This document shows positions 30,601 through 63,600 of a stretch of 64,000 bases of DNA, piece by piece (the stretch's first letter is position 1; each line of letters begins with the position of its first letter). This DNA comes from Macrostomum hystrix (lineage: Eukaryota > Animalia > Platyhelminthes): the NCBI GenBank assembly GCA_950097015.1, contig CATNEN010000010.1:2108001-2172000 (forward strand), written 5' to 3'. The position numbers and the translations under genes were made by a program. Under the pieces are notes generated by a model. That model worked only from the letters and a program-made list of their open reading frames with translations. It made no database searches and had not been told where the DNA came from.

Positions 30601-33600
30601 GGTAATATTTGTTGCTTGCCTGAATGGATTTTTTTTAAACGTGCCATTTTGCTCACTACAAACAAGACAAGTAAAAAACGCAGGGAAGGAACGCGAAGTC
30701 GATCGAGGTGATCACAAAGCGACTCAATTACCTCACCTGGGAGGAGGCCTTCATCTGTCTGACTGACGAGGAAATGCCGGACCAGCTGCGAGCCAAGTAC
30801 TGCGAGCTCATCACCACAATGTTTGTGGACGTTGACGACAACATCAGCGTGCTGGACAAGATCGACCTCACGTTTGTCTACGACGATATTTCCAAGGGCA
30901 ACAAGGAGCAACAGACAAAAGTAGTTGAGATGGTAAATCAGCCGAATTGTGCTTTTGACACTTCATGAGTGTTTAATTGAATGCAATTAAAGTTTTATTC
31001 TTACTGACTCTAGGGCATATTTACCCATTGAATCCCCGAAACCAACAGGAAACGGGCAGGAAGGCCTCAACTCAGAGGTACTTTCCGGCACTGCGAGACT
31101 GGTTGGAAGGCTTCCTGGACCAGAACCACGACATGACCGCCTCGGAGGTTGGGCACAATGTCCTCCTTGCCCACGTCATGCAGATGCTGCACTACTTGGT
31201 CAGGTTCGGTTACTACAACTCCAGCACCGACATCAAGAAGCTGCTGAAGCCGCTGCTGGAGCTAGCTTGACGGACGAAACGACAAGCCGCTGCCGAGAGG
31301 TGATTTTTGAACTGCTCAAGATCTCTCAGGCAGTGTACGCTGTGGGGCGGGGAATAGTAGCGACATAAAATAGAAAGCATTCAATTGCAGCGAATTCATG
31401 CCTGTATCTGCTCATTTCAGGCGTGTTGTCAAGCGAAATGGTGGCGAATGTTGCAGGATGTAATCAAAATCAATTTCTTGCGTCTCACATTATGCACTAT
31501 ACTGTTTGATCGAATACAGTTAGCACGCACTTTCCGCATAAAAACTATCCTCAATACTGACCTACGTTTGCGACTGTGGTAGACAATGTATTTTTTATTA
31601 TAATAATCTGAGTTGATTGTACGGAAAGTGATCCTAGGAGCAAAGGTAGGGTAAAGTTTAATTTAGCCCTAGTGGCTATTGCACTAAAGTGCAATCAGTG
31701 CAATGGTCGCTCACTTCTAAACTTCATCTGACTCTGGAATACAGGCCGCTCGTTCTGTGTGGCCTGGTCTTTACGAGTAGCAACTTAGTTTGTCCTGTGC
31801 TTTGGGCTTTCCAATTCCTAAATTTGAATAAAAATCGTCTGGTAGTTGTGTTTGTTGTTTGGTCAATCATTTTTTGTTGCAAGCGTATGTTAACACAGAA
31901 ACAATAACCGATCTTCTCTAATTTTAACCCTAACCAGCCGCATCATCGGACTATGAAAAGGTGCTGCAGCATTATCAAACCGTCGATCGATTCAAGCAGT
32001 CAAGAGAAACGAAGGCAGTTGTGGACGCTAAGTTTCAGTAAGGGATTCCTTACTGACTGGTACATGCTTGGTATACTTACTTGCTTTCAACTTACTTGGT
32101 ATATTGTCTAATAGCATTTCACTGCAATGTAATTTTCTGCAGAGCCATGCGCGTGCTGGACCTGTTCTTCAACTTCCGCTTCAATGTACGGCTGAAGCGA
32201 TTCGTGGCAGAGTTCAAGGATATTCACCGGGCGGCCCAGAGCACCAGCTCCACGAGCCAGGATGTACTGTCTGCGCTGCTCAGCGAGACTTATGAGCTCA
32301 ACGAGCAGTGAGTTCAAATATGGATTCCTGAATGACGGTTCTTGAGTATATGCCATTGTCTGATCCAACCTTAAGCATCACATCAATTACTATTTTATAT
32401 CCCAGTGTGGACTCCGTCGCTGGGCAACGCCTTTCGGACATGTTTGCTGAGTCCGCCTACTTCAGGAACTTCGACATTGTTGATGTCCTGCTGGTAAGAA
32501 GACTTTGAGTTGATTTGAGTAGTGTCCGTGCAAATTTAAACAGCCGGTATGTAACATGAGAACCAAAATCACGCGGACTTCAGGATCTGAGCCACTACGA
32601 GTACCCGAAGATGGTCCAGATGTCGATGTGGCTTCTGAACCGCTATTTCTCCGCATACAATTTGCTGTTCAAGCGAGCCGTGCTGGCCCAGGTGCTCATC
32701 ACTGATAGGTCCGTTGCAGTGCACAAGATGATCGAGGATGAGAGTCACGTGATGCACCGGATGATCGGCTCAAAGATGACCGACACGGACGTGGAGAAGA
32801 TGTGCTCAATTTTGTCTAAATTTTGCAAGTTAGTGAGAATCATCAGCATATGCAATTGATTAACATTATTTTCACCCTTCTTTTCATTTAATTTCAACTG
32901 AAATTCCGATTATAAACGGTTCAAAGAAATCCTCATGTCATACCTGCAGGGTCTGCCACCTGGACGACGAGCCTGAAGAGAGGCACCCAATGAACCAGGC
33001 CATTCTGTACAATAATGGAATATTAAACGATATTTTCGATTTGGTGTCTCAAGATGTGGATATTAACTTGCTGGTAAGATTCAAGTCCAGGTGGATACGG
33101 TCAGTCACGTGGCGTTTATAAAATTACTGGCGCCTCTAATAAAACAATTTTCAAGATGTTCCGTGAATCATCCAGGATGACAAAACGGGTACAAGCTCAT
33201 CACCGCATATCTGATTTGTTTATTCTGTTTCCTCCTTTTACAGTTGGCTAAAATTTAGTTAATAAACACAGTAGCCATTCATTCCTAAGAAAGCTTAAAG
33301 AAACTTAGACACCACTTTATATTTCATTTTCATTTCAAGTAGAGTACAGAAACGATGCACTGCAGAAAAAATAGAATAGTATTATTCGAGAAATTGTTTT
33401 ATTTGACTTATCAACTAAATAGCACGGTTTTCTCTAATAGATTACAATGGATTATCTCTACGCGCGAGTATATTCTAGCCACTGAACTGCAGGACGAGTA
33501 CAGCGGCCTCCGCCGAGTCTTTGCAAAGTGCTTCACCTTGTTGCGACTTATGGCTAGAGGCAACACCGTGGTGCAGAACCATTTGTTCGACCGGCTGGAT

Positions 33601-36600
33601 ACTCTGCTGAGCTGCGTTGGTGCCGAGTCCGAGCTGGCGTTGGCTCTAGCCGAGGTCTTCACTGGCAACAAGAACACCTGCATGAAGGTCCTGCCGCACC
33701 ACATAGCAAAGTCTATGTCTTTAATAGCGCAACACGGATCTAAAGCACCAGAATTTCTCGACATGCTAAACGCTCTGGTGAAGGTCGAGGAGCTGGATCT
33801 ACCACTGAAGCGCAACCAAGCCTACGTCATGAAGTACTTCATGCAGCAGAGAACCGAAGTGGCTCAGTGCCTCGACCAGAAGAAGGACGCCCAGCTGCGT
33901 TTGCTCAGGTCTGCCTCTCACTCGCCAGAGTCAGACTACATGATCGCTCTGGTCGACCTGCTGGCCACCTGCGCTGAGGGCGAGAACCGCTTCATCGAGT
34001 CTATCAACCAGACCATCTACCGAGTGAGCGACGTGCTGGTGATACTGACGGACCCCGCCATCCCGAACCACAACAAGCGGCCCTTCGCACGCTTCCTGCT
34101 GTGGGTCTACCTCAACACGGCCGGCGGCCTCATCGAGAGCGGCGCCGGCGACCTGCCGCACGATGGCAATATGTGGCAGCTGTTCGGCATGGTCAGGGAG
34201 GACCTGCGGCGCATGGCGGAGCTCGCGATGGAGAGCCCGCAGCTCGTCCGTCAGCTGATGAAAGTTCGAGTCTACAAGAAGTAAGTTGGCACACCTAAGT
34301 CGGCTTCCAAGTGTCAAACACAATGTCTAGTATGAAGTAGGAGCTTTTTGCAGGTTAATGGGGTTTGAGTTATTGTGCTGTGGTCGTCCTTTAGCAAATA
34401 CTTTGTGAATTGTTTTTAGATAAACCTTTAAATTTAAAACTGGGTGCTGGATCCATTAAAAGATAAACTAGATATAACATCACTGATTGCGTTGTCGTTA
34501 TGGACACAGAGTTATGGACACTAATCAATATTTTTAACAAACTCACTGATTGCGCCTTTTATATATACTCGTACTTTGCGGCGTATTTCATACTGTATTG
34601 CGCAGCACTCAACCAAATAATGATTTGTGCCACGATGCGTGAAATTTTCAGACCAAAGACTGCCTCTGCAAAGAGTGCAGATGAGCGAAGAAAAGTGGAA
34701 ACCCTGCCGCAAGTGTACGTTGACGATGAAGTGTAACTGCACATTTTTGACGCGCTAACATTTCATGAGGTTCATTGGTTTTGCATGAGTACGGCAAACT
34801 AATTTATTCGAGTTGGGGCTCACTCACTGCAGTGGTAAATGCTTAGTAACGGAAAAGATGCGAGTAGATTAGATAGACTAAGCGCCTAGCCCTTGTAAAC
34901 ATTTCAGAACCATTGAGGACTCTGGGAGTAGCCGAAAGCAGAATATTTCAGACGAGACCGTTCATGGCACGCTGAAGTTTCTGTTTGAAGGGGCTCTGCC
35001 AGTCATTAGTGTGAGTTTAACTTCATCGCTTTAAATTAGAATCTGTGCTAATGACTTGCAATGGAATCGGCTTAACTTCAGGTTTTCTTCAAGACTATTT
35101 TCCTGAAGGACTTGGAGGAACATCCCAAGGAAATTGACGAAATCAACAAGCTTGCACAAGCACTGATGGTGAGTGTTGCAGTTAAGTACTTTTTGTAGAA
35201 GCAATATTATGGAGACAAAAGTTATCACAGTTTCACCTTCTCAACTTGAAGACCTTCGTTGATGCCGTCATGCCTTTGGCATCTGATGAGAAGTACGTCA
35301 AGGCGCTCCTGGGCTGCACATCTTCCCTGCTAACTGTTAGCACCCTGCCTTCAAAGGTAAATGAGCTTGTATGTACGCTGACTGACAAGCATAAAAATGT
35401 ATTTTGCCCTATGCCCAATAAAAATAATTATAGACTATCGAAGATTTTCAAAGCAAGTACGGCTCAGGAATTCAGCTCAACTGGGATGCTCGAACTGAGG
35501 GCAGAAAGGTACGTCTATGGAATGAACAATGCACAAAGTTCGAGTTTTACATATCGGAAAGCAATTGTTTTCAGCGCTACGAGGAATACTACAACACGGA
35601 GGAAGAGCTGAACGTGCAGCTGAACGTGTTCGCCACCAACTTTAACATTTCCTACGGCGGCGAGAATACTCTCCGAGCCCAGATCGGCTTTCCAAGCGAC
35701 TTGGGTAAGCGCAGTAGGACTCTGGCACTACTGTACCAAAAGTACAAAATTAGCGAAAGTCCCAGTCGTTAGAGGCTCAGAGGCATGGTTTCGACTTTCA
35801 GCCAGGGAAGCAATTTGTGTCCTTCAGCAAGTTCTTCAGTTCCCTATTGCTTTCGTTCACCTAGCCGTAAAATGGTAACCAGCACCAGTTAGAAACGTCA
35901 GTGGGTGTGGCGGCCTCCGCAGACCACTGCACTGCACTATAGCTGCGGCTGTGGCACTGGTTGTACTGGGTAAGGTGTAAATTATGAATTCTTCAACTCG
36001 ACTAAAAATCTCCGCCATCAGACTACACTGTGATTGGCAGTGACGAAGAGCTGCCGCTGGGCAAGGAGTTTCAAAACCACATGGCCTGCTTCATCAACCC
36101 GGACCTGGGCGTATCGGATCCACTGAAGTTTAAATTGGCCGGCAAGCTGGTCGAGCAGCTGCAGTGAGTAGAAATGCCATTGCGGTAGAATAATAATAAT
36201 AATTGTAACACACTAAAAGTGGGGAACGAATCTCGCGCTGGCAGACCGAGACCGGTTTCTGGCTTGTTTGCCTTCGTCAGTCAGCCATAGCCACACGCAG
36301 TCCTCTCCCACCACTCTTAGTGTGCACAGAAGTCTCTTATAAGCTTGCCATTTTTATGGCGATACTTTTTTAAGTGTTATGTGAGAGTTTTGCAGCCAAG
36401 TCTTTGCTGTTCTACTGTTGTCAGTAGTCTTAATTTTATCTCTCACAATAATAATAATAATTGATTACACCTGGCCGAATTGGGTCAGATGTGCAGATGA
36501 TAGCACAGTCCATGGACTGGGGACGCCACACCCACCTTCAATTATCCCAGCAAATGCTGGTACCTAGCTGGGTGAACTAAAGCAATGCAGAGTTAAGTGT

Positions 36601-39600
36601 CTTGCTAAAGGACACAAATTTTTCCAGTGAAGTCAGGAATCGAATCCCCGACCCTTAAGTCGTGAGTCCGATGCCCTAACCACTAGGCTACCTCTTCTAC
36701 GGTAGAACTTAACCAATATCAGCCGAATCCTGCAGCTAGGGAAGATTATCAGTCCCGAGTTTGAGACAGCTGGTAGTCAATTCTGAGCTCACCTAAATCT
36801 TTGTTACACCTGCAGCATCTCGAACCAGATGGAGGTAACGAACGAAAAAGAGCGAATCGAACAGGAAATCCTGGATGTGAAGTGCCTGCAGCTCCTGCGA
36901 GCCATCATCCACAACGAGATCGTCAAGCTGCCTGACAACTTTGACAGCGCTGACACAAAAGAGTAAGCGTGTAGTGTCAATAACGCAATCGCATGCTCGA
37001 TATTTTTGCAGACTCATTGTAATTTGCTTAATATGGCAACCCTATGTCCATAACAATGCAACCTTATGAAAGTGGACAGCAGCATCAACTGCTTCGACGA
37101 TTAGTTTCCCTGTGATGATAGGTTAACCAAGGAAGAATATGAGAAGCAATGCGGGAAATTAATGAGGCATGCAAAAATATTTTAATCTAATTTTCTTCAG
37201 CATCATGGCCAAACTTACTGGTAAGTAGTGCAAGTTCCAGAAAGTTGGTTCTCTTGGGCTACATTGCGCACCATAGCGCTTCACTTGCTGCTCAGGAATA
37301 TTCGATTGACAAGCTGTAATACCAAGTGCTGAATTGCCTCGGTTTCAGGCTGACTCGAATGGGACAAAGTGATCTTGCCAGGTATTTACAAGATAATGTA
37401 CAGCTTCCGTTGCGAAAATGTTTCGTGCTTTTGCGTTAAACTACCCGCTTGAAGCATTTAATGCATGTGCTTAACGCGCTTTTTTCAGTTTAACATGAGT
37501 GCTTGATGTAGCTTGAAATTCATTTTTTATCAACGTTATGCATTTTGAGCATGGCTTGAGTCTCAAATTCAAATTTGAAGTGTTTTAGAGCGTCTACAGT
37601 CGTATACTCGTAAGTGTTACGAGTATTAGCTTGCTTTCCTCTGATTAATCTGGGCATTGCAGTTCCGTGTCAAAACACTAGCAGTTGTGTCACGGCCGTC
37701 TTCGGTCGTTAAAGGTTTTAATTTCTCGTAATTTCTATTTATTTCTAAAAATGACCTTTCATAACATAAAGGTTGTACTGGGTTACCCAGTTAAATACAT
37801 TTTATATTTATTAGTCAGTGGCTTGACAGCGTAACTTCTTACTTCTTTACAATCCAGACTCATTGAGGTGATCTCACAAGTCCAGAACTCGCTTAACAAG
37901 CACGACGCCATGCTAAAAGTGCTGCCACACCTGTCGAAACCGTCCGACGAGATCGTGCGAGAAGTACTGGGCTTCCTGGCCAACATGCTGTTCAACGGCA
38001 ACGAGGAGGTGCAGGGCAGCCTGATTGAGTATTTCTACGGCACGCGCGAGGAGAAGTTCTTCATGGCTGTTAAGAACCGCATCAGCTTATCGTCAATGGC
38101 CTGGAAGGAGAAGCAAGTACTACTCGACTGTTGGTTATAGGCTGGTGTAGCTATGAGAGTTGAAATTATTTTGGCACACAAATGATGGGGCTCAGTCTTT
38201 CTTGTGCCATTCTCAGCTACTGTCTTTTAATGCTGTTTAAATAAAAAATACAACTTCAATGATTGCCTTAGCAATAGGGTTATTCGATCCACTTTTACGT
38301 TTTCAGTCGAGCGCTAATAAGTCAGCATCAGGCAAAAATCGAGGAAGCCATCGCTGAAATGCGCGACCTCCAGCAGGCGATCAAGGAAGGCCGGGTCTCC
38401 GCAGAGGCGATGCAGGGCAGCAAGCTGGGCTCAATGTTGATGAGCATCCAGGCCAGCAGGACCAGCGTCGGTGGAAGCGCATCCAGAATGCGGGGCAGCA
38501 CTGCGGAATTGCGTCGGCGACTTCAACGAGCGGAGGGCTCCACGCCACAGATCCGCGGATCGCAGTCCAGCCTCCACGCAAATGGCGCTCAGACAAGCAC
38601 GGCAGCTGGCACAGGTGCCGGTGGATCGAAGGCCCTACTGGTCAAGGGTTCTCAGCCGCCCAACGGCCAGGCGGTCGGATTCCTGCCGGAAAATCGGGTC
38701 GCTCCCGTCCAGCAGAGCATTGTGGGAGCCGCATCAGCTATTGACGATGCTGAAATCGAGGAGTTGGCAATGAAGGTCGTGATGGAGAACGAGAATTTGC
38801 AGATGAAAGATGGTGGCTATATTGAGCTGGTGCTTCGAGTGCTTGCTTATATATGTGACGGACAGAACACTCAGCTGCAGGACTACCTTCGAGAGCAGCC
38901 CGACAACATTAAGTCAATCAATCTTGTGGCAGAAACAGCTCGCTTTCTAGGCCTAACCTACACGTCGATCAACAAAGCAAACATTTCACTGATCATCCAG
39001 ATTTTTGATACTTTGGTTGAATTCACGTCAGGCAACTTGAGCAATCAGGCGGTGTGCTTCGACAACAAAGTGTGCGACTATATGAACTATCTGTTGCGTT
39101 CCAAGCAGTCCTATGCAAAGTTCGGTCTTCAGGACGAAATGAGCATTAAAAGATCAATCGCCAATTTGATCATTGCGATGATTGAAGAAAATGTCAAGCG
39201 TGCAAAGGACCACGACCCGGCTGAGCTGCTGGGAAGCAACGGGCTGAGCGCCGCGCACATGGAGAATAAGCTGAAGGCAACTGCCGGAGTTGCCGACGAG
39301 GTGAAGGACACAATCGACGCGGAGAGCATTCGCAACGTGTTCTACGACTGCTACCGGCGCCACCTTGACGAAAGTCTGACGAAAGAGTCACGAGAGATGA
39401 TTATCACGGTGGGATTCAAATACTTTCTCATATTTCTGCGATTTCAGGACCTGGATAATCGAGAAACGATTAACTTCGAAAAGATGATAGAAAGAGATGT
39501 CGATGCAGAAGACCAGCAACTTGCGTGGGATTTCTATCAGTCCAACACCATGTCGATTGAGGTGCTAAAAGACGATAACCTGCAAAAGGTCTACTTCCGC

Positions 39601-42431
39601 GTCAAGGACAGAAAGGTTCTTCGAGAAGAAGTGAAGGAGCGCTTCAAATATGAAGTGGATCGGTAGGAAATTTATTTGTTTTTTCTTCATTTATTTAGCA
39701 TCTACAAAATACGAAGTGTAATCTGTAAGGGTGAAAATCAAACCTTAAAACGCACAACAGGACATCTCCGACGAACAAGCTGCGCGACTTCTCCGACTGG
39801 CTGCGAGAGATCATCAAGGACATCAAGTGGCAGAAGCGAGTGCTCAGCAATCCTCTGGGCTCATTCTTTGTGCACGGCTGGAAGGCCTTCAACATCCTGT
39901 GCATCATCCTGAGCCTGGCCATCAGCATCGTGGTGTTGGTCACTTGGACCAAGCCTGACGATAACAGCGATCCCGTGCCAGTTCGCACAGACGCGGCAAT
40001 CTATGCTACCTATGTGCTTGGCATTCTGCACAATATACTCAGCATGTTTGTACTAATTAGTTTCTTCCTGTGCAACAACCCATATGTGCCGAGTCCCCGT
40101 CAGATTCGCACTTTCTGGTCGTAAGTTAATCGTTTCATATTACGAGCTACTTGCTTATTAAAAATATAGCTCCCGCTTATGTTTTTGTTGTCTCTAATCC
40201 TTGCATAGGAAACTGATTGGGGTCACTCCAAAGGACGTCGAAGAGGACGTAGAAGAATCTGGTGGCAAGCTGCAGGTGTCCGTATTCAGCTTTAGCACAT
40301 TCTACTACCTGATCTTCTTGGGCTTCTCTATTCTGGGGACGGTCTTTTACGGCTACTTCTTCGCGTTTCACCTGCTGCACATTGCCAGGCACAACCAGCT
40401 GCTCACGCGAGTTATTCAGGCCGTTACAAAGAACGGTGAGTCAGTTCCGCTTTTATGTCATTTGATATTTAGTGCTAATATACTGTTTCGAAATATTTTG
40501 GTCTGAAATGTATTCCTACAAGAAACTGTTTTGTCAAACATTAGGCCTCTCGTTGCTGTGGGTTCTTATCTACTCCATGGCATTCTTCTTCATTTACGCA
40601 CTGCTGAGCTTTGCGTTTTATCGGAGCATATACGACAGCACGACAGGAAACTTCTGCGAGACCATGTACCAGTGCACGGTGACCGTCATTCACCGAGGCC
40701 TAATAGCTGGAATCTACGATGTGAGTCGCGCTTGTGAGAACTGGCGCTGCACTAAAGCCATTGTTTTTTTAATTAAGAATGGACTTCAAATCGTAACATC
40801 AACACGATCTCAGTAGAAGTACGAGCGTATCTTCGCCCTACGTTCTCAAGTATTTTAATGAACGGTTTAATGCCACACGCCTCATTTTAACCTTATGACA
40901 GGAAAATGTAAGTACCCCAAATGTTATAATGCATGCCACATATAAGCATGCACGGACGGTAATGTCAAAGTACCATAAAAATTACTCATTTCATTTCCTT
41001 GCTTTTCCACCTCGCAAGCAACACATCGCCTTTTGAAGAAATTACCACAGCACTCATTAGCCCGCTCCTTGCTCTTGCTCGAATTTTCTCAGTTTTTAGT
41101 CCTTTTTATAGCTGTTGTGGTGATTTTAGAGCCTTTCTGATGAACCTTTCTTCTGCATGAGTTTTTATCAGATGATTAATGTCCTCAAAGTGACATTTTT
41201 GTGAAAGAGCAAATTTAGCCCATGACAATTAGCTTGTCTTGCAAGTGATCGATTAAAGGATACTTTGATCTAATGTGAAATCATATTTATTGCAGTACCT
41301 TCCCGTGCCCAGCAATGAGTCGTTCACGTATCATGTTGTGAAAGGCATCTTCGACATTTCCTTCTTCATCATCATCACCACCATCGGCCTGAACATCATC
41401 TTCGGCATCATTGTCGACACATTCAGCGAGTTGAGGGACTCCAAATGGCAGATCGACCAGGACATGACCTCCGTGTGCTTCATCTGCTCCAGGAATGCCT
41501 ACGACTTTGAGCACCATGGAGAGGTAAGACACTCATTTGGATACTGCAAGCAGCGACCTGCCGTCTGCTCAATTCTGATGCCTCCAACCAAGAAGGTTCT
41601 ATCAGGCCAACATTGATCGTTCAACTTTATTTATTGCCAGGGATTCGAGAAGCATGTCAAGGAAGAGCACAACCAGTGGGCCTATCTGTTCTTCATTCTC
41701 TACCTGGACGAGACTCGATTCAATGACTACACAGCCATCGAACTGTTTGTCTGGCGACTGGTGAGCCGAACTCCCTCCCTAAATTTAGAGTTTGTGTTTG
41801 TGTTTGCTTGCCACGCAAAACTGCAGCAGCATGAGTTACATAAGAGCTTGACTCCAATAATAACAAAGGTGGCCTAACATGAGTTTCTCCAATCAACAAT
41901 CAGTTTTTTTGTTCATTCCTTCTCCAGTTTGAGAAGGAAAGACTGGACTACTTCCCGTTGAACAAGTCCATCACGCTGGAGGCGGCTGAGGACAACCGGG
42001 AGGAAGCCAAGCTCGAGACCCTTCTCAGCCAAGTGTCCTTCCTTGTTCGCAAGTGGAAAGAGGAGGTGAGTCACGTTTCAGTCTCAAAAAGCCAGGTGCT
42101 GTTAAGTTCCGGGCTTGCTGAATCGCTAATAAACCAGTTCAGTACTTTGGAAAGTGAGCAAGCGAATGCTAAATCGATCCCTTGTTTACAGGAGCTAGCC
42201 AAAGAGCGCGAGCGCGAGAAGCAGAGGCAGCAGAAGTGGGAGGAGCAGCACAAAAAGAGTGGCGACAAGGCCACTTTGGGCCGGCTGGTTCCGCCCCGGC
42301 CGATGACCGGCAAGCAGAAGACTGGACATGGCGAGTGCAGTGGTCGAGGCTGCCTTCAAATGACCCGCGAAGCCTCTGACTTAAAGTGGCTGCCTTTTGT
42401 GCCGACTGTTTTCATAATTGACGCCTCGTAA
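24683..42431 (+). CDS. ITPR: Inositol 1,4,5-trisphosphate receptor-like Ca2+ release channel, non-canonical lineage (copy A), about 2750 aa; one apparent +1 frameshift at 31264-31265
   Basis: Exons: 24683-24771, 24955-25025, 25103-25227, 25400-26182, 26649-26727, 26822-26910, 27069-27194, 27964-28107, 28343-28528, 28764-28778, 29341-29463, 29553-29777, 30126-30236, 30530-30601, 30684-30932, 31049-31299, 31421-31459, 31938-32037, 32143-32307, 32406-32493, 32584-32828, 32950-33073, 33493-34280, 34652-34714, 34908-35010, 35082-35168, 35252-35356, 35434-35508, 35575-35704, 36022-36163, 36816-36962, 37349-37381, 37858-38112, 38307-39662, 39761-40120, 40209-40435, 40545-40720, 40902-40907, 41296-41523, 41641-41760, 41928-42065, 42192-42431. 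Phases are continuous once the single extra base is removed. Motifs: [37 protein letters not shown]-associated LQDYLREQ, six TM segments, [18 protein letters not shown]2H2 CFIC...H...EH. The length of the C-terminal tail is less certain. Confidence 0.92.
28764..28778 (+). CDS. 15-nt in-frame microexon of ITPR-A (TSAEC)
   Basis: ttttatctttacag|ACGTCAGCGGAATGC|gtaagtagact; counterpart in copy B at 63720-63706 (KSADY) with the same gtaagtagact donor. Confidence 0.7.
35751..35990 (+). mobile_element. tRNA-derived SINE with a Meta/CORE-like central domain (degenerate copy) in an ITPR-A intron
   Basis: Degenerate B box (GTTTCGACT), core TTTGTGTCCTTCAGCAAG...ATTGCTTTCGTTCACCTAGC...GTGGGTGTGGCG, and AGGTGTAA before the tail, all shared with the copy at 36447-36698. 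Confidence 0.55.
36447..36698 (-). mobile_element. tRNA-derived SINE with a Meta/CORE-like central domain and (ATT)n tail in an ITPR-A intron
   Basis: Minus strand: A box GGTAGCCTAGTGGTTAGG, B box GGATTCGATTCC, core TTTGTGTCCTTTAGCAAGACACTTAACTC...GTTCACCCAGCT, 3' ATTATTATTATT. Confidence 0.7.
40902..40907 (+). CDS. 6-nt in-frame microexon of ITPR-A (EN), directly after the pore filter
   Basis: cattttaaccttatgacag|GAAAAT|gtaagt; 9-nt counterpart in copy B. Confidence 0.6.
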
Positions 42432-43904
42432 CTTTCTGTCCAACTGTCTTCCGATTGGCTGGGAGGAGATGGTTTCGTCGAATGTATTTTAGCCACAAGT
42501 TGGCTATCTTATTTAGGCAGAATACCTTTTCTAAGGCCTGTAAATGTGACTAACGCGTTCCTCCTCGCTTTTATATGTATAAGCTCTGAACTCTTTACAG
42601 ATATTTTACTCCCTTTATTGATATTGTTATCTGCCTGTCGCTTTCAAGTCTTGTATTTTGCCTTGGCGTTGCTGGAAGCTGCCTCCGACATGAGTTTTGA
42701 CTCGAGCTCTTACGGTGCCAAATCTTAAACAGTTGTACGAAGTCCTCATGTTAATGCGTGACTGACATAATGCCCTTGTGCAGGGAAGCTTCCAGCAACG
42801 GTCTGACACTCCTGACACTTACTAACTGTTGATGAGTACTAGAACTCGATGAAAGTTGGTGGCAAGTGAAAAAATAGTCAGTAAGATGGAACCGTTGAAG
42901 AACCAATGAATAGAAAAATAGGGATGGGAAGCTTTTAGGTGGTGCTACTGCGCTCGTTTTCCAATTCAGTCGCCACACACTTTCATCGGTGCAAACTCTA
43001 AATTAAGCTAACAGTTTTACCTAGAGTAATCAATTATAATGCTGGTATGTCGCATATTGCCAGACACAGCACTAACTCCTACTTCCATGCCGATGTATGT
43101 GTGATGTATTCGGCTGCCGACCTCCGCTATACTGGCTGTGCGTATCGCAGCTTTTGTGTGCGAGAGTCTTTCCTGTTAAATCAGATGTACTTGTGGATTA
43201 TCTCTTTGATTTAGCCAACTTCTTCCTTGCTCACTGTTATTGCCGGCGCTTTGTCTGAGATTTTTCCAGTTTGAGTTTATAGTTGAGATCTTATGATTAT
43301 TTTGATAAACCAGTCTACTTCGTATTTATTACGAGCTACTATAAACGTTAAACGTTAAATAAACGTTAACGACATATTTTATCTGAAAAATACAGCATAA
43401 AAGTACATTCATGCCTCACCCCTTATATTTTTCTGTTGTGAGAGCCCTTCGATACTATATCAAGTATACGATATCAAAGATTTCTAGATAGTAGTTGTAA
43501 CTACTACTCGTACAATCTGGCTGACGTCAGAGAGCTTGGACGGTAGGGCTTGTGATTCAGTATTGAAGAAACTGAGGTCACCGGCCAAACCTGAGTCTAA
43601 CTGACCGATTTCGCAGCCAAGAGGATGCAAGGTTAATACCGACGCGGCAGTCCTAAAGAAACGGAGGATACTTTAGAGAGCGCTCTTACTCTGCAGCAGC
43701 GACAAGGGCAATCGAATTCAGTGCTCGGTCTACTCCTGGTGATAATGCAAACAAGCACAAATGGGCGTCCCAAGCTTACAGGTAAAATCCGGTGAGCGTC
43801 TGCCACGTCAGTCAAGCTTACTATGAGAATTGGAATCGGGAGACGAGACACGCATAAGGTGGACTTAGGCGAGACTATCGTAAAAAGCAACCAATGATAT
43901 AGTA

Positions 43905-44142
43905 ATAAACGGCTATGAGTGCTGCAATGTTTTTAACCGAGGGCGCGTAGCGCCCGAGGTTTAAAACTTTGCAGTACGAATAGCCGTTTATCACTGGCAT
44001 TGTATACTTTTGGACCACAGACAGTTGGGGCGTGCAACAATCAGTCTCACGGAGCGGATATAGCCAGCGGTCTCGCGGGGCGTGCAGCAATCGATTATTT
44101 TGTCGATTGGTGCACGCCCGAAATGTCTATGGTCCAAAAGTA
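43905..44142. repeat. Two adjacent imperfect palindromes (fold-back or MITE-like element)
   Basis: ATAAACGGCTAT...GGGCGC GTA GCGCCC...ATAGCCGTTTAT (43905-43991) and TACTTTTGGACCA...TGGTCCAAAAGTA with about 38-bp arms (44005-44142). Confidence 0.75.
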
Positions 44143-51600: not shown

Positions 51601-54600
51601 TGGCGCGCAGCAGCTGCAGGCACTTGACGTCGAGGATTTCCTGTTCGATTCGCTCCTTCTCGTTGCTCAGCTCCATCTGGTTGGAGATGCTGCCAGACGG
51701 GGGAAAAATTGTTGAGAGCTTAATCTTCCATTGCACAAAAGACACGAAAGCTCACGACAGCAGCGGTTTGCAGAGAAAATGAGTCTAAACTGGGTTCGAA
51801 AGCTAATTAAAACTGATTTATTTATTTAGAAAATATTATTTCTAACCCTGAGCACTCACAACAGCTGCTCCACCAGTTTGCCAGCCAGTCTGTACTTCAG
51901 CGGATCCGTGATGGGTCGGCTCGGGTCGATGAAGCAAGCCATGTGGTCCTGGAACTCCTTGCCTAGGGGCAGCTCCTCGTCGCTTCCTATTGACGTGTAC
52001 TCTGAACATGGCAGAGGGATACTCGTAATTAAATTTGAGGCAATGAGTTCTCAGCATGCTTTAAGACTGCACAATGCATGGGGCTCCCCTGCTTGGGCTT
52101 GCTTGGAGCGGTGAGTCGGTACACATCATTTGTGTGTTAGTCAGACTGCCACTTTGTGATATTTGGTATTTGATTTGTGATGTTAATCTGAACAGGGATT
52201 TTTAATCAGATTAGTGGGAATTTGTTTCGGAAATATGTGGTTCGAGTTTTGAGTGCGATACCCATACGATTATTGTACTGGCCCATTGTACTCATGTTTG
52301 CCTCCGCTGCTTCCTTTACAGAATGCTTTTCAAACCTTGATCGCTGTCAAAGCCGATTTGATCCCTGACAGTGTTTTCTCCTCCATAGGAGATGCTGTAG
52401 TTGGTGGCGAACACGTTCAGCTGCACATTGAGTTCCTCCTCGGCTGAGTAGTACTCCTCGTATCGCTAAAACAGTTTTACGATGCGCTTAAACTTCCAGA
52501 TTCTTCTGCATCCAGTAAGTGGGATCCAGTCACTCCGGGATCCAGTCACTCTGGGATCCAGTCACTCTGGGATCCAGTCACTCTGGGATCCAGTCACTCT
52601 GGGATCCAGTCACTCTGGGATCCAGTCACTCTGGGATCCAGTCACTCTGGGATCCAGTCACTCTGGGATCCAGTCACTCTGGGATCCAGTCACTCTGGGA
52701 TCCAGTCACTCTGGGATCCAGTCACTCTGGGATCCAGTCACTCTGGGATCCAGTCACTCTGGGATTTCGCCATAATGCAATTCGCAGGCTTACCTTCCGA
52801 GCTTCGCTCCTGACATCCCAGCTTATCTGAACTCCGCCTCCATATTTTCCTCGAAATTCTTCGATTGCCTGAAGTAATTCAGTGAATAAATTAATCAGTC
52901 CACTTTCAGCCTTTGTCATTTTGGCGATCGTAAATAATTTATAGTAAAAAATATTTAGGCATAAAATCTGAGCTGATTACTGATTATTGAATTTGTAATT
53001 AGAAATCGATTACTAATCATTGCAAGTCGATTTCATTGGCCTCATTATCATCTCGAAAATCTGCTGTCAAGAAAAAAATCAGATTAGTTTCTTCGATTGA
53101 TTAAAAGGCCTGGACCCATTCAAAGCTTTTCTTTCACCTTAATACCGCTAATCTGCCTGTCCTGCAAAGTTAATCGCGAATGTCACTCGTATGGTATCTG
53201 CTACTTGAAGTAGAATATGAGAGGCTTTGGCACAATAGATTGGTCTCGAAGTGTTGGAGAGAGTTCAAGTTCTGCTCCTTTGACTCACCTTGGCTGGCAG
53301 GGTGCATACGGTGAGCACGCTGGTGGCACAGCTCAGCAGGTACTTCACGTACTTCTCCTCGGAGATTAGGGGCATGGCGGCCTCGATGAAGTTCTGCCAA
53401 AAAAGGCGATGGTACATTGTCACGGCTCAAGAATTATGAGTAACTATGAAGACGAACTGATTCTTGCAGTTCTGACAGCTTACAATGAGAATCTTGGCCA
53501 GTTTGTTAATCTCATCGATTTCTTCCGGGTGATCTTCCAAGTCCTTGATGTAGATGCTCTTGAAGAAGGTCTGGAAAATTTATAGGCTCGTCGTGGCAAC
53601 TGATTGCCATATAAATGTGGATAGAAAATACCGGTCAAAAGAATAACTTCCAGCTCACATTGATGACAGGTAAGGCGCCTTCAAACAGATACTTTAGCGT
53701 CCCGTGAGCCGCTTCATCAGTTTTCTCCTGCCTCTCCTTGCCAGCCGGGTCCTCCATCTCGCTGAAAGTTTAATCAACGAAAAGCGAATTTGCGAATCAC
53801 TTTTTGGGAACCGCTGATGGATGCTTTCAATGTCACTGTCAATGTCACGAAGTCAATAAGATCACAGATCATTGTGCTGAAGTCAGACTCAGTTGTGTAA
53901 TTCTAATTTAAAAAAATTCTGAATGAAAACGAAGCTAAGATTTTGAAGCTATGAGACACTCTTAAACTATGAACCAGAAAATCTTGCAGTCTATTTAGTC
54001 TACGCAGGTAAAGTTCGAGTAAGAGCTAAAATTTCGGCATATCCATTTTGAGCAGATTGCATTAAATGGAGGCACTCACTCTCTTAATAAAACTTGAGAT
54101 CAGAAGTGCTCACATCTAGGGTGTGGGACGTTGGATTGAAACTGGTGAATCTCATGTGGGTTTCCGACATAGAAGATAGCTATGAACTCGGTGTTCTCAG
54201 TCTAGACTACCTTGGTACGTGTATAAACATCTCACTGCTCTACATCTTCCAGTCATTTTCCTTTGCACTCATTCCCTGCACAAGTCCTCAGGTCCTGATC
54301 CATCTCCCTTTGCACTCATTCCCTGCACAAGTCCTCAGGTCCTGGTCCATCTCCCTTTGCACTCATTCCCTGCACAAGTCCTCAGGTCCTGATCCATCTC
54401 CCTTTGCACTCATTCCCTGCACAAGTCCTCAGGTCCTGATCCATCTCCCTTTGCACTCATTCCCTGCACAAGTCCTCAGGTCCTGATCCATCTCCCTTTG
54501 CACTCATTCCCTGCACAAGTCCTCAGGTCCTGATCCATCTCCCTTTGCACTCATTCCCTGCACAAGTCCTCAGGTCCTGGTCCATCTCCCTTTGCACTCA

Positions 54601-57600
54601 TTCCCTGCACAAGTCCTCAGGTCCTGATCCATCTCCCTTTGCACTTCATTCCCTGCACAAGTCCTCAGGTCCTGGTCCATCTCCCTTTGCACTCATTCCC
54701 TGCACAAGTCCTCAGGTCCTGGTCCATCTCCCTTTGCACTCATTCCCTGCACAAGTCCTCAGGTCCTGGTCCATTTCCCTTTGCACTCATTCCCTGCACA
54801 AGTCCTCAGGTCCTGGTCCATTTCCCTTTGCACTCATTCCCTGCACAAGTCCTCAGGTCCTGGTCTAGTTTACCGACAAGAAATCGGAAACCAGCCATAA
54901 ATTAGAATAAGAGTAAAACTCAACCGATAACAGAAAGTTTTGAAATCTACTGTTCTAAAACGGTTAACAGTAAACGGCAATTCAACCAGAAATCGGCGAT
55001 CTAAAAAATAAACAGCAGCAAAACACAAGAACAAAGGAAATACAGAAGACACGGGCAGCTCAGGCGCAAATGTAATGCAATGCGCAGTGAAATTTTTACA
55101 CTTGAGGCAGCGTCTCCAGCTTGTGCTTGTGCGATCGCCTCCTTTTGGAGGAGTGTCTCTTAGTTCTGAAAGCGGACGTTGCAACTGATGGTTGTGAAAG
55201 CTCAGCGAGAACTGATGCCAAAGTTGGTGACCCCAAGATTAAACAATGCTGAACAGTAATAGTGACAAATGTGAGCGAAAACTACAGCTTCTGCCCAAAC
55301 TGCATGCGAGGTGGCCCAGAATATCTGCCGCTATCATTCTGCATTTTACTCGTACATTTTAGCCATGGCTAGTGAAGGGCTCTGCGACTCGCAGTCGATC
55401 ACCAGCAAGTGCGATTGAAGTGCACCAAGCTTTTTCCTGCAACGTGCCGCAAAATTATCAGCTGACGAAACTAAAAATGGACTGTAGTAGCACTACACTA
55501 GCACACTTAATAAACACCTCGTAAAATGCGCATCAACATGATTTATTAAGACTAACTGAAGTCATTAATTCATTCGCAGCCAGTTTGAGTGTTGTCATCT
55601 TTCCAAGAATTGCACAGTTGCGAAATTATTTGCGAAAAGGCTCTAACAATCACCTAGAATCAAAATAATTTCTTTTGACGAGGCTCTGAAATGTGACTCA
55701 CTTTTTCAATACTCGAATCTTCAGCAGCTGACGGACAAGCTGCGGGCTCTCCATCGCGAGCTCCGCCATGCGCCGCAGGTCCTCCCTGACCATGCCGAAC
55801 AGCTGCCACATATTGCCATCGTGCGGCAGGTCGCCGGCGCCGCTCTCGATGAGGCCGCCGGCCGTGTTGAGGTAGACCCACAGCAGGAAGCGTGCGAAGG
55901 GCCGCTTGTTGTGGTTCGGGATGGCGGGGTCCGTCAGTATCACCAGCACGTCGCTCACTCGGTAGATGGTCTGGTTGATAGACTCGATGAAGCGGTTCTC
56001 GCCCTCAGCGCAGGTGGCCAGCAGGTCGACCAGAGCGATCATGTAGTCTGACTCTGGCGTGCGAGTTGGCGATCGCAGCATGTTCAGCTGGGCTGCTTTG
56101 TCCTGGTCGAGGCACTGAGCCACTTCGGTTCTCTGCTGCATGAAGTACTTCATGACGTAGGCTTGGTTGCGCTTCAGTGGTAGATCCAGCTCCTCGACCT
56201 TTACCAGAGCGTTTAACATGTCCAGGAATTCAGGCGCTCTGGAGCCGTGCTGTGCAATCAGGGACATTGTTCTGGCGATGTGGTGCGGCAGGACCTTCAT
56301 GCAGGTGTTCTTGTTACCAGTGAAGACCTCGGCTAGAGCCAACGCCAGCTCGGACTCCGCGCCGACGCAGCTCAGCAGGGCATCCAGCCGGTCGAACAAA
56401 TGGTTCTGCACCACCGTGTTGCCCCTGGCCAACAGACGCAGCAGGTTGAAGCACTTCGCGAACACGCGGCGAAGACCGCTGTACTCGTCCTGAAGACAGG
56501 CGCACACTGAAGGCAGTTACGAGGTAGCAAGTGCTCGACATTAACTGAATCCTTTCGGTTAAAAAGTTTTTTATTAAGAGGTGTGAAGTTTTACAGCTAA
56601 GACTATTGGCAATAGAGTCGTAGGCATGTGAAAGGAATAAAAAGCACGACATACAAACGCATTAGAAAGAAGCTTTTCAGTGAAAAAAATGCGTGGAATA
56701 CATTCTCCACCACGAAGAGGTATTAAATTTGGTATTAAATTAAACACGTATTTTCGTGTGAAAACGTATATCAAGCGCTCGAAGAAAAGCTTTCACCAAG
56801 ACAGAAAGACAACTATTGTGTGAAGGAAAACAAAACGAAAGTTATTTTTACTCTTAAGGAAGGCTCAATCGATAAAATTAAAGCGGAGTACCTTTTTCTT
56901 CTTTTGCTTTTTCGATGCTCGAGCAGTCTTGAAAGAATGGAATTAGTGGAGAGCATCAATTAACAAGTACAGAAAACCGTCTCCTTCTTGTATTTCAGCA
57001 AGGATTCGGAGCGTTGCGCTTAAACTGTTCAGCAAATATCAAAGCAAAATGTTTTTTTCTGTACGCAAAGCGAAACAAGCCAGCCAAGTCGGCAATGACT
57101 TAGCGATGTTTTTCGACTGTTTATGATTCGGAATGTCTAGGAAAGCTCAGGTACTGACCCCTGACGAAAGACAAGCATCAGTCCATCGCGAATTTCGGCG
57201 GGTATATAGAAATCGAAGCGATGGAAGAAAGTACACTAGGACTGTCAGAATGTGCAGTGGGCTGTAAGCGTTGGTGCACGGGGATAGAGAAAACAATTCG
57301 CCTATTTTACTTCTCCGCTTCGCTTGGCTGTTCTCACCATAGGATCTCACCATACTTTCAATGATCAGTTCAATTTCATTGTTCACTATAGATTCAAGGT
57401 TCGAATCCAGCCAAGCGGGTGACGTGCCAGATGATAAAATATGCCCGACACTCCAGTGCCGTCTGTGCTCATGCGATGAAAGGTGCGCATTCTTGCTCAC
57501 CTGGACATTCAATCTCGTCTCGTTGTCCACCACTACGTTCTTGAGTAATGAGAAATTTAAGCATGGGAAAGTGCACAGGGGATTAATCCTTGAGCAGGCA

Positions 57601-60600
57601 CATCAGCAGGCGGCACTTTACTACTACCGTTACTTTGTAGATACAGTCTTACTGTAAGAGCGATGAGAACGGCTTTGCAAAAAGCGGCAACAGACAGGTA
57701 CAAGTGTTAGCAGGTGTGTCACTGCATAGTAAATACGCTCGTAGGAGTTGGGTGTAATTATCAGTTCGTTTTGTTAAGACAAATCAATAAATACAAAAAA
57801 TATTTCTGCTTCTGCGCCTAATTTTCTTCCAACAATGCAAATGCAAGTAAATTGTAGTAAGTAGTTTAGTTCGTACATTAGCCATACTATATGTTGTTTT
57901 TCTTAAAGTACCTTAAGTACACTAGGACTCAACTAGTGTACACTACACTAGTACACTAGGAATAGGTATAAATCTTAATGACTACATTACCTGACATTCG
58001 AATTCACTATTCAATAGTAGCTCACCAACAGATTAATATCGATGTCCTGGGACACGAGGTCAAATATGTCGTTGAGAAGTCCATTATTGTAGAGAATCGC
58101 CTGATTCATTGGGTGCCTCTCCTCTGGCTCATCGTCCAGGTGGCAGACCCTGTGTGCAGGTCGTTTTCTTTAAATTATGTTTAATGACAAGAAGGAATGT
58201 AAAATACTACTAAAGAAACTGGTGCAGGTGATAGATAGCTGCTGGAGAATGAACTGTTTGACAGTTTGCAAATCATGTAGGAATTTTAGTCTTGCAGTTA
58301 GGCATCAATCTACGAGCTACTACAGCTGTGAGACGAATAAGTAATCCCCTTATCAATCCTCTCATACCTGGTGAACTTAGACAGGATGGAGCACATCTTC
58401 TCCACATCAGAGTCGGTCATCTTCGAACCGATCAAGCGGCGCATCACGTGACTCTCTTCGTCGACCATCTTGTGCACTGCCACCGACCGATCGGTGATGA
58501 GCACCTGAGCCAGGACGGCTCGCTTAAACAGCAGGTTGTGCGCTGAGTAGTAGCGGTTCAGCAGCCACATCGACATCTGGACCATCTTCGGGTACTCGTA
58601 GTGGCTCAGATCCTGAAATTATTGGACGAATATGTCAAAAGATCGCTCATAGGAAATGTGCAATACATCAAGGACCAATAGTAGCACTTCCTTAGCTAGA
58701 AGTCTAGAAGTACTTGTGATACACACTTAGAACTCGAGGATCCAATGACCCGACAAACGATTTGTAAACTGACGATGTAAAGCTCAGGCATACGAGCATG
58801 TTGTTGTTGCTCTGTCAGTAGAAGCTCTGAATGTTCTTAACTAATTGTCTACTGACATTTACTCACCATTAGAACGTTGACGATGTCGAAGTCCTTGAAG
58901 TAGGCGGACTCGGCGAACATGTCGGCCAACCTTTGACCGGCGACTGCGTCCACACTGGAAGACAAGAAGGCAAGTTCGCTGTGACAATTGAAGTCAGGAT
59001 TAAAGTACAATTGAAGCAGTTCGTACGACTTCACCTCTCATCTAAGTCGTAGTTCTCGCTCAACAAAGCAGCCACAGGGTCCTGACTGTTGGACAGAGTG
59101 TTCTGTGCCATGAACTGCACGTCCTTGAACTCGGCTACGAACCTCTTAAGCCGAACATTGAATCGGAAGTTAAAGAACAGGTCCAGGACTCGCATGGCTC
59201 TGCAGTTACAGGTAAAATAATTTGATTCGCTTTCCGTGGAATTCATTTGAAGCAGAACTGGTTAGCAATAACTTACTGGTGTTTGGCATCGACAACAGCC
59301 TTTGTCTCCCGGGACTGCTTGTAGCGTTCAACAGTTTGGTAGTGATGCAGCACTTTGTCAAAGTCTGACGTTGCCGCTGTTCGATTGAAGAGTGAATGAT
59401 GGACCAATTTGAATGCTTGTAGAAGTTTTTACACTTTACAATGGCCCAGTTCGCATTTAGAAATGGAAAGAAATTGGAAAGACAGTTTTATTCACAGTGT
59501 CAAACTGGGCGTGCTCAAAAATCACGTAGAGATTTCGGAATGCAAAACTGATAAAATTAGGATCAATAATATAAGAATGGCAGAGTCGCATCGTGAAGTC
59601 AGTGCCCAGCGACGTACTTTGTTTCATAATATTTATAGTTCCTAGGCAATAATATCTTACTGTAGTTCCTAGGCAATAATATCTTACTGTAGTTCCTAGG
59701 AAATTGAAAACCTGACTGTCTCTCTTAAAGCGTATTTCAAAAATAGCCAAGCTCAGGACAGAAGTACTAAAAGCAAAGATTAAACAAGCAGTAATCCAAA
59801 CACGTCCTCTTTCGCTAGACTTAACGCTAGGCTCGTATAGTGAGCTAGGAATCTGCGAATGCAAAGGCAGACAATTTCTGCATGAGATTATAGGTAGGTA
59901 AATTTATTAATTACTTCCTGCCACATTTGCCACCATTCCTCCACCGAAGGTGCCTGAAATGAGATGTTCAGCGAAAGACGAACTGTTTGAAATATTTCCC
60001 GAGATTTGTTTGAGGACACAATGCGCGATTGGCGAGCTGCATCTACTGCAGAACAATTTACGCTACAAAAAATCGATTTTCCCAATCAAATTACGTGATA
60101 AAATACTAAGTGGTACAGCCAACTGTCCTCACCTCTCGGTAGCGGCTTGTCGTTTCGCCCATCCAGCAGCTCCAGTAGCGGCTTCAGCAGCTTCTTGATG
60201 TCGGTGCTGGAGTTGTAGTAGCCGAACCTGACCAGGTAGTGCAGCATCTGCATGACGTGGGCCAGCAGGATATTGTGCCCAACCTCCGAAGCCGTCATGT
60301 CGTGGTTCTGGTCCAAGAAGCTGGCCAGCCAGTCTCGCAGGGCAGGGAAGTAGCGCTGTGTGGTGGCATTTCTTAGAGTTGTCTGCAGCAGAAGGGATAA
60401 AACAATGCAGTCGACCAAAGTGCACTCAAATTAAGAGCAAGGACATTCATGATCAACACACAGTCTCACCATTTCGCCCATCTTAATCTGCGAATGCTTC
60501 GAAACGTCGTCATAGACAAACGTGAGGTCGATCTTGTCCAGCACGCTGATGTTGTCGTCAACGTCCACGAAACATTGTGGTGATGAGCTCGCAGTACTTG

Positions 60601-63600
60601 GCTCGCAGCTGGTCCGGCATTTCCTCGTCAGTCAGACAGATGAAGGCCTCCTCCCAGGTGAGGTAATTGAGTCGCTTTGTGATCACCTCGATCGAGTTTG
60701 CATTTCGGCCCTGTGGAGCAAAGTCGATCGAAGCTTCCTGATCCCCGATCCTGATCCCCGATCCTGATCCCCGATCCTGATCCCCGATCCTGATCCCCGA
60801 TCCTGATCCCCGATCCTGATCCCCGATCCTGATCCCCGATCCTGATCCCCGATCCTGATCCCCGATCCTGATCCCCGATCCTGATCCCCGATCCTGATCC
60901 CCGATCCTGATCCCCGATCCTGATCCCCGATCCTGATCCCCGATCCTGATCCCCGATCCTGATCCCCGATCCTGATCCCCGATCCTGATCCCCGATCCTG
61001 ATCCCCGATCCTGATCCCCGATCCTGATCCCCGATCCTGATCCCCGATCCTGATCCCCGATCCTGATCCCCGATCCTGATCCCCGATCCTGATCCCCGAT
61101 CCTGATCCCCGATCCTGATCCCCGATCCTGATCCCCGATCCTGATCCCCGATCCTGATCCCCGATCCTGATCCCCTATCCTGATCCCAAGCTTACCTGGC
61201 AGAGTTTCCCGAACAAGTCTAATTGGTGCTGTAGGAACATGAACTCTTCGATGATAGTAGAGTTTTGCTGAAATGTAAATTACATTTGTGGTATGACTGT
61301 GACTGTGACGAGCTTTGCTTTACTGCTTATTTTCTCAATGTCTTATTACTGAAAAGGCGCAACTGAAATGTCAAATTGTCACAATATGCATAGCCATTGC
61401 CTCTGTTAGTAGCAAGTACGTGGGACTTCACTTATTCCTTAACAAATCCACTTTTAAACATAAGAAAAACATGTGATTCTGTCCGGATAAGGTTTGGCAG
61501 GCACGCGTGAACTACTACAAGTAGTGAGCTGAGGACACAAAATGAAAGCGGACCTCGCCTCACCATGGCTTCCATCGCTTCTTTGTTTCGGCCATAGGCT
61601 TTTAGCTTGAGAGGAGAAAGTGCAAAGTTTTTCGCTTACTTTTCTGCTTCTGCCACGTTGCACAAATACTAAAATTCAAGTTGGAGCACCCAGTGGCCAA
61701 CAGAACAAGATTGGGCAAAAAGAAAGAATTCGAAAGAAAAAAGGCTATGTATGACAGTAGTAATTTAGATTATTAAAGTTAGAAGATGGAATCAGCCAAT
61801 AATGAGTGCCTAGAGGATCAGAAAAAATAAAAATATTCGATCCTCACCTCTTCGGGGCTGAGCTTTCGCCTGTTCAGCTGGCGTTTGCGCGACTTGACAT
61901 GAGTGATCTGGACCGAGCCGTCAGCGTTGAGCTTCGATGCGGCCACCGCCTTCTGGTACTGAAGTTGAAGTGGAGCGCAAGTTACTATCTATGCCCATTT
62001 AAACTTGCGCAACTAACAATTTACGAAAGCATGGGGAAGTTCGGCGAATCCGTAAGAAGCGAATGGGTAATTCGGCAAATAGGGATTCGGTGAATAGGGG
62101 GGTAAACAAACTGCTCGATCATACCCTGCCCCTCAATTTCAACTAGCTAAGAGGTGTCTGTCTGGCATGAAGGTCAAAGAGCCCCTTTTCGATCACTCTC
62201 GGCCCGGTGCCAATCGTTGAGGCCTTTTGGCTCGTTGGCTTACATCTTTAGCGAACTGAGCCAGTGATGTCCAATGCCGCTTGTTGTCCACAGACACAAA
62301 CACCTTGTCCTTCTCCTTGCCGACTGTCTGGCCTAGATCGGTAAAGAAGACTATACAGAAGCTCTGACCCTCCTCCAGCCACTTCTGCGTGATGTAGTTC
62401 TGGTTCTCCGGCATGCTCAAGCCGTCGCAGACGCACAGGACGCTGAGCAGCTCCAAGTAGCGAAAATTCTATGGTTCAAAGAAAGCCAATTCTAGGAATG
62501 AATTGCTGGAGGCAATAAGAAATCATGTGATGACAGTAGACCCAGAGCCAGCTAGGAGGCAACTCTGCCCATTTCGCTGAATTCTGAGCACGCACGCACA
62601 CAGATACAGTAGGCAGGCACGCACAGTGTGTTCATCTGCCGTAACTTTCTCATCGTCAGGCAGTGTGCACTTTCCCTGTACCTTGGAGGCTGGCCCTCAT
62701 GGGCATAAATTGCACATTAAGCCCCCAAACTTCTCTCCGCGGCTGCACCCCAAACGAATTTCGCCTCGCCGCGGAATCGGACCTTGCGAGGGACCTTCCA
62801 AGGTCTCCGCGAGGGAACTCGTTTGACCGCTCAACCATTCACCCTGCCCCATAGAAATGCTAAACTCTGTGTGTCTTCTGCTCACCCGATTCTGCTTCAA
62901 CAAGTCGATGATCTCGTCCACGTAGCTGTGCGGAATTCTATCCACAATTTTCCGGTTGTCCTTGATCAGCTCCATGATCATGTGGGCAGCGTTGAGGCCC
63001 ACCTCCTCCTGAAGGTTATTGCGAGCTTGCGAAGTGATTTATCAATCAATCATAGATTTTCTCAGCTTTGCATGCTTTGCATTCTACTGATGGAAGCACA
63101 GGTATCTGTGTTCAATACAGTATAAAAATTAAATTCGAAGCTGAATTCTGGAGTTTTAGCCAGACATAGTTGAGAGAAATAAGGGGCCAGCAGCAATAAA
63201 ACTTTGCTCAGTGAAAAAAATTTCAGCAAAAAGCGATGAGATTGTGCGCTGAAGTTCGTTGGAAATTCCGGTTCCGTTAATAATTGCTTTCTCGTATCTA
63301 GGAAGCAACAAGCAAACTCCATCTAGAACTGGTTCACATGTACATGTAGCACACATGTACGGGAAATTCACAAAGGGTTGCTGAGCTCGACTTACACTCA
63401 AAATGCATAGGTGAATACTTGAAGTGTGTGGAACAAAATGAAACTTGTGACAATGGAACTGGAAGCCGGTCGTAGTCCAAAAATAACTGAATTCTAGATT
63501 TTTTAATTCATTTAGATTTACGAGTATTTAAATTAGCATTAAGGAAATCTACTGGACCTTTAAGGTTTCATAACAGATATTGGCATGGTATGGCAGCACT

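Follow-up and report, generated by a model that had tools for sequence, protein, structure and literature searches.

Where two paralogous genes have drifted far enough apart for their synonymous sites to be saturated, how can parts of their exons still be identical base for base? The question is raised by a 64,000-nucleotide stretch of the genome of the flatworm Macrostomum hystrix (contig C10:2,108,001-2,172,000, in an assembly of 220,453,370 bp and 42 contigs; hereafter the window, whose numbering is used throughout), which carries, in inverted orientation, two ITPR-like genes, copies A and B, of the family of IP3-receptor calcium channels. An earlier note on this DNA had described a sharp mosaic of identical and wobble-saturated tracts between the two copies, and had proposed an old duplication with repeated recent gene conversion inside exons. 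The proposal gains support from a saturated synonymous background, five significant shared fragments in a Sawyer-type test, three age classes of tract and a graded GC content at third codon positions (GC3). We conclude, with a probability of about 85%, that A and B are old paralogs between which GC-biased interlocus (non-allelic) gene conversion has acted inside the longer exons.

Two convergent ITPR-like genes

Copy A occupies positions 24671-42431 of the forward strand (stop codon 42429-42431) and copy B runs on the reverse strand from 45627 (stop codon 45627-45629) to about 71000; the two genes are convergent, 3′ end to 3′ end, on a single contig. As the 5′ third of B lies past the end of the window (64000), an extra 10 kb (64001-74000 in window numbering) was added to recover its 5′ exons. 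The centre of the inverted pair is a 3.2 kb spacer between the two stop codons (42432-45626), whose arms show no similarity and in which we found no convincing open reading frame. The exons of A and those of B carry Pfam domains in a single shared order (Ins145_P3_rec+MIR, RIH, RIH_assoc, Ion_trans), and their PDB matches are to ITPR1-3 at the corresponding residues. Judged by these predicted domains, both copies have the domain order of the ITPR family, including a C-terminal ion-transport domain with S6 and linker. The matches to vertebrate ITPR structures are weak (E-values of 1e-20 for 25400-26182, 5e-9 for 33493-34281 and 5e-10 for 41296-41523), and A and B form a divergent branch within the family. 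For the pore exon, the score obtained with the ryanodine receptor was slightly above that obtained with ITPR.

Stop-free segments of A and B were aligned and then chained into exon blocks. The resulting alignment comprises 37 exon blocks and 2688 codons without in-frame stop, with 83% amino-acid identity and with differences at 13.6%, 9.1% and 37.2% of first, second and third codon positions, respectively. The ratio of nonsynonymous to synonymous substitutions (dN/dS) is about 0.1 where measurable, indicating that both copies evolved under purifying selection, and both are probably functional. All blastn high-scoring segment pairs between A and B overlap coding blocks and none lies wholly in an intron; the introns therefore do not align, as the earlier note had stated.

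A mosaic of near-identical and saturated coding sequence

Tract identities were read from the assembly consensus sequence; in what follows, coordinates of A are on the forward strand and those of B on the reverse strand. Seventeen exact A-B runs of at least 30 bp sum to 1974 bp. The largest tract (Tract 1; A 25396-26187, B 68236-69027) fills a whole exon and is 792 bp long, with one mismatch at 25874. Its identity spans from the acceptor (ACAG) to the donor (GTGAG) between neighbouring introns that are unalignable, and the exon aligns to ITPR1 residues ~93-319, which we take to be the beta-trefoil domains. The B arm of this tract lies outside the window, and the mosaic is thus larger than previously noted. 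Tract 2 (A 30699-30880, B 60513-60695) is the same in both copies but for a single base, which we could place as an extra C at 60569 that breaks the frame of B. It is followed by a short identical run (A 31211-31254, B 60177-60220), just downstream of which, near 31264, the frame of A is broken, and by an identical run of 55 bp (A 32579-32633, B 58563-58617).

The exon aligning to ITPR1 ~1270-1460 (ARM2) is itself a mosaic. A near-identical stretch with exact runs of 33, 41 and 38 bp (A 33568-33704, B 56278-56414) gives way to a diverged island with 22 mismatches, mostly at third positions (A 33705-33780), and then to a tract identical at 99 of 99 positions (A 33781-33879, B 56103-56201). A hyper-diverged island comes next (A 33880-33922; 43 bp, of which 18 are mismatched, with numerous amino-acid changes), located in a variable linker of this RIH/ARM2 exon that also varies in Macrostomum lignano and oyster. 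Beyond it, in the ARM2 or second RIH domain, A 33923-34244 and the reverse complement of B 55738-56059 are identical at 322 of 322 positions. Both of these perfect identities had been reported before and were reproduced exactly, and the codon strings quoted earlier as differing at wobble positions were located at A 33703 and at B 56259 on the reverse strand.

Towards the 3′ ends, the copies share an identical run of 51 bp (A 37973-38023, B 49887-49937), a tract of 107 bp with one mismatch (A 39825-39931, B 47999-48105) and a tract of 168 bp covering S6 and the linker (A 41359-41526, B 46567-46734). The last of these had been described up to 41523 with one mismatch; the mismatch is at 41490 and the tract extends to 41526, where it ends at the splice donor. 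Its exon aligns to ITPR1 2556-2621, presumably S6 and the following linker/zinc finger. Where borders were read at base level, they fall at splice sites or at diverged islands (e.g., 33880-33922 and 33705-33780).

To describe the mosaic statistically, we used the 2157 codons at which A and B specify one and the same degenerate amino acid. A hidden Markov model with two states fitted these codons better than a one-state model by ~198 log-likelihood units, and a third state added ~12 more. Of the 2688 aligned codons, the near-identical class contains 596 (22%), with a dS (synonymous substitutions per synonymous site) of 0.013 and differences at 1.2% of 4-fold degenerate sites. The intermediate class (683 codons, 25%) has a dS of 0.67 and 37% of 4-fold sites differing, and the diverged class (1409 codons, 52%) is saturated, with a pS (synonymous differences per synonymous site) of 0.81 and 67.5% of 4-fold sites differing. 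The longest identical run covers 156 informative codons, whereas none of 10000 permutations gave a run above 34. When each exon kept its own divergence, the longest run was 99, and 5000 permutations reached no more than 55. Since the observed run lengths exceed every permutation, chance is excluded.

The GENECONV test proposed in the earlier note took the form of a Sawyer/GENECONV-type test. It covered the 2626 sites at which A, B and a third ITPR paralog, paralog C, are polymorphic; paralog C served as outgroup in the tests. Paralog C is the nearest relative of the pair in the genome (contig C11, 6426001-6466000) and has ~71% DNA identity with it. Five fragments in which A equals B are globally significant, all with P<0.01: fragments of 141, 120 and 50 sites (P=0/10000 each) and fragments of 24 and 21 sites (P=0.0008 and 0.006, respectively).

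Constraint fails to explain the identity of the tracts, because, in these exons, the synonymous sites of paralog C are saturated relative to A. In the exon filled by Tract 1, identical throughout its length but for the mismatch at 25874, paralog C differs from A with a pS of 0.63-0.70 and 60-69% amino-acid identity; in the 322-bp tract, pS is 0.58 and identity 53%; and over the tract exons overall, pS ranges from 0.58 to 0.70 and amino-acid identity from 50 to 69%. Paralogous loci in one genome, significant tracts of low divergence between them and a constraint insufficient to produce these tracts are thus found together, and what they describe is most probably interlocus gene conversion.

A probable GC3 footprint of biased conversion

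GC3 was compared at codons for which A, B and C agree in amino acid. It reaches 0.89 in A and 0.88 in B within the tracts, versus 0.69 in C; 0.82 and 0.85 in the intermediate class, versus 0.66 in C; and 0.64 and 0.68 in the diverged class, versus 0.66 in C. At discordant sites in the tracts, cases with G/C in A and A/T in C outnumber the reverse by 78 to 15 (p=2e-11), and the corresponding counts in the diverged class are 94 and 103. An excess of AT-to-GC changes is therefore confined to the recombining sequence, as expected of GC-biased gene conversion. Unbiased copying, or an averaging of two copies, would have kept GC3 at the background value; a graded excess of this kind is what conversion biased towards G/C over a long time would leave. 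The gradation of GC3 suggests an origin of the intermediate class in older tracts that later escaped conversion.

Tract placement and exon length

The tracts are distributed according to the length of the exons. Near-identical sequence makes up 1773 of the 4923 bp in the 11 exons of at least 200 bp, versus 15 of the 3141 bp in the 26 exons shorter than 200 bp. Six short exons with 90-96% protein identity are unconverted, including the exon for the pore helix and selectivity filter (A 40544-40720, forward strand; 93% amino-acid identity, pS 0.74). This placement fits a rule of minimum homology length better than selection for matched subunit surfaces, and as the most conserved short exons are unconverted, no selection of that kind is needed to account for it.

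Alternative explanations

Some points weigh against GC-biased interlocus conversion as the explanation of the mosaic. Slower synonymous evolution, and not older conversion, could lie behind part of the intermediate class. The GC3 excess could in principle come from local hot spots of allelic recombination instead of interlocus events. The support is drawn from an assembly consensus, from paralogs of the same genome and from protein fragments of M. lignano, and three frame disruptions point to an imperfect consensus in these places or else to recent breakage of the copies.

These disruptions bear on the idea, raised for polishing in the earlier note, that the identity is an artefact, the reads of A and B having been mixed during canu correction or during Arrow or Pilon polishing such that the conserved patches were homogenised. 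The assembly was indeed built with canu from PacBio continuous long reads (CLR), polished with Arrow/gcpp and then with Pilon on Illumina reads mapped with bwa mem, and has a Merqury quality value (QV) of 42.8 (PMC10468722); both the CLR basis and the short-read polishing through bwa mem leave room for such mixing. The three disruptions, each of 1 nt and in or near the copies, point the same way, one of them, the extra C of B at 60569, lying well inside an identical tract; the others are one extra base in A near 31264 and, in B at 46402-46410 on the reverse strand (~46408), 10 nt in place of the 9 in A. Past A 31264 and B 46408, most A-B differences remain synonymous once the frame is shifted, and past 60569 the copies are identical; the disruptions must therefore be either very recent or errors of the consensus, and we think that they are probably the latter. 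Extending such errors to the tracts themselves meets several difficulties. Neighbouring exons are 20-30% diverged, and cross-mapping could not turn divergence of this order into identity. CLR reads span the unalignable introns and hence map uniquely. Averaging of two copies would have given a GC3 near the background of 0.65, whereas GC3 rises from ~0.66 to 0.88 and is graded over the three classes. Finally, the pattern of tracts tracks exon length. Homogenisation by polishing is thus very unlikely as the source of the mosaic; at most, polishing could have removed a few scattered differences where the tracts were near-identical to begin with.

The earlier note had also suggested that conversion might keep assembly or gating surfaces matched for heterotetramers. 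In such a scheme conversion is real and selection governs where the tracts lie: A/B heterotetramers would favour a matched beta-trefoil ring and a matched S6/linker region, and the diverged islands would be shielded and carry copy-specific functions. The two clearest tracts do align to the ITPR1 segments ~93-319 and 2556-2621, which make inter-subunit contacts in ITPR structures solved by cryo-electron microscopy, and the island at 33880-33922 combines many amino-acid differences with a position between two perfect tracts. Against this, the pore-helix exon and the five other short exons with 90-96% identity are unconverted, the island sits in a linker that is variable in M. lignano and oyster as well, and exon length together with general conservation predicts the placement of the tracts without selection. 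The suggestion is left unsupported by these data, and we hold selective placement to be highly improbable. A broader claim, that strongly GC-biased interlocus conversion gated by exon length is pervasive in M. hystrix and that selection for compatible heterotetramers additionally holds the beta-trefoil ring and the S6/linker identical, also appears very unlikely to us. If heterotetramer selection were true, the mosaic would map which surfaces of the channel must match and which may diverge.

Purifying selection at the nucleotide level without any exchange (through RNA structure, editing sites, splicing enhancers or extreme codon bias) could draw on the fact that the codons of the tracts are somewhat more conserved at the protein level (A-C identity of 0.68, versus 0.56 in the diverged class), and on the enrichment of GC-ending codons among identical codons outside the tracts as well. 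It is hard to reconcile with a step from 1.2% differing 4-fold sites in the tracts to 67.5% next to them, or with paralog C, which is saturated in the same exons and has no GC3 excess. Over the mosaic exon, M. lignano protein fragments share only 69-74% of their residues with A and B, and have replacements within tracts, including the 322-bp tract. We know of no constraint that freezes 782 consecutive coding bases, and consider this explanation scarcely credible.

RNA- or cDNA-templated conversion (complementary DNA, with a spliced transcript as the repair template) would suit exon-confined tracts, one of which fills its exon exactly, but has a negligible chance of being correct, as a spliced template would yield junction-crossing tracts and tend to delete introns, whereas both neighbours of the exon that is converted in full have saturated synonymous sites (pS 0.54 and above 1) and all introns are kept, and as a DNA heteroduplex blocked by heterology predicts exon-exact borders too.

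A possible course of conversion

GC-biased interlocus conversion between A and B needs no new mechanism, as GC-biased gene conversion is an already known process. Conversion between the two copies is probably ongoing. Homologous-recombination repair between the A and B loci would form heteroduplex DNA, and would do so only where there is enough uninterrupted homology, that is, in the longer and better conserved exons. Extension of the heteroduplex would be halted by the unalignable introns and by the strongly diverged islands, which would produce both the sharp borders and a tract filling its exon from one splice site to the other. Repair of mismatches in this heteroduplex may favour G/C, and many rounds of it would raise the GC content of third positions. 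The process could be self-reinforcing: identical stretches would stay convertible, and short exons, together with stretches below the homology threshold, would escape and diverge further.

Comparison with known systems

In the palindromes of the human Y chromosome, inverted arms are kept alike by intrachromosomal conversion and are more than 99.9% identical throughout, non-coding sequence included. A and B share the inverted layout with these palindromes, but only ~22% of their coding sequence is near-identical and their introns are unalignable. We considered a classical palindrome with arm-to-arm conversion and rejected it, with introns and spacer unalignable and 52% of codons saturated. Duplicated genes of human and Drosophila reportedly undergo GC-biased non-allelic conversion in short tracts between nearby paralogs, with enrichment in G/C. 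Compared with these, the shift in GC3 between A and B is large (0.66 to 0.88), and it can be read against a non-converting paralog, C, from the same genome.

In yeast, old pairs of genes from the whole-genome duplication show concerted evolution restricted to coding regions, with loss of homology in non-coding sequence (PMC3924837). As in A and B, exchange takes place within coding regions although the non-coding sequence is unalignable, and conversion ceased where homology was lost (PMC3924837). Unlike the yeast pairs, in which the whole open reading frame is homogenised, A and B are rich in introns; each exon is an island of homology, and the outcome is a fine mosaic gated by exon length. 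The human RHD/RHCE pair consists of paralogous membrane-protein genes whose 3′ ends face each other and between which conversion occurs in cis on the scale of exons (PMC4824203, citing Wagner and Flegel 2000). It resembles A and B in both the facing 3′ ends and the exon-scale conversion. RHD and RHCE are young and similar throughout, introns included, whereas A and B are saturated outside the tracts and are separated by a spacer with no evident gene. No report specifically on gene conversion in Macrostomum emerged from a literature search.

Repeats in and around the pair

A 13-nt satellite, TCCTGATCCCCGA, present in ~35 copies, fills two different introns of B (60736-61187 and ~66500-67500) and is absent from A. 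Introns of B are further enlarged by tandem arrays at 54260-54865 (47 nt x 13) and 52520-52765 (16 nt x 15); B is ~25 kb long versus ~18 kb for A. At its C-terminus (45627-45765), B carries a low-complexity insert rich in Gly, Asn and Ser and encoded by GGC/GGT/AAC repeats, which A does not have. Upstream of A lies a C/T-rich minisatellite of ~2.5 kb (~15500-18000) with ~50% C and 33% T on the forward strand, a GC skew of -0.78 and a unit of ~21 nt (e.g., CTCCTGTTCTCTCCCCTCACA).

Other members of the family

The M. hystrix genome contains ~10 further RIH_assoc loci, none close to A or B, and the ITPR/RyR family is expanded in this genome. A DNA search of the same genome found no other close copy of A or B and no homeologous second locus. 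In paralog C, the counterpart of the 782-bp exon is interrupted by an additional intron near residue 187. Single-exon queries against the protein collection, for which full-length products are outside the query length range, returned no transcript or read-assembly product from M. hystrix; the best relatives in this protein search were M. lignano fragments (~70-74% identity) and molluscan ITPRs. The M. lignano protein fragments lie as far from A as from B.

Meaning for old duplicates and for Macrostomum ITPR genes

The A/B pair shows how conversion between old duplicates dies out piecewise where introns split a gene into islands of homology. The dS between A and B is useless for dating the duplication, and read mapping, polishing and orthology assignment for the ITPR genes of Macrostomum can go wrong at the identical tracts. 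Together with the non-converting paralog C as an internal control, the pair could serve to estimate, in a flatworm, how strong GC bias is and what minimum length of homology conversion requires.

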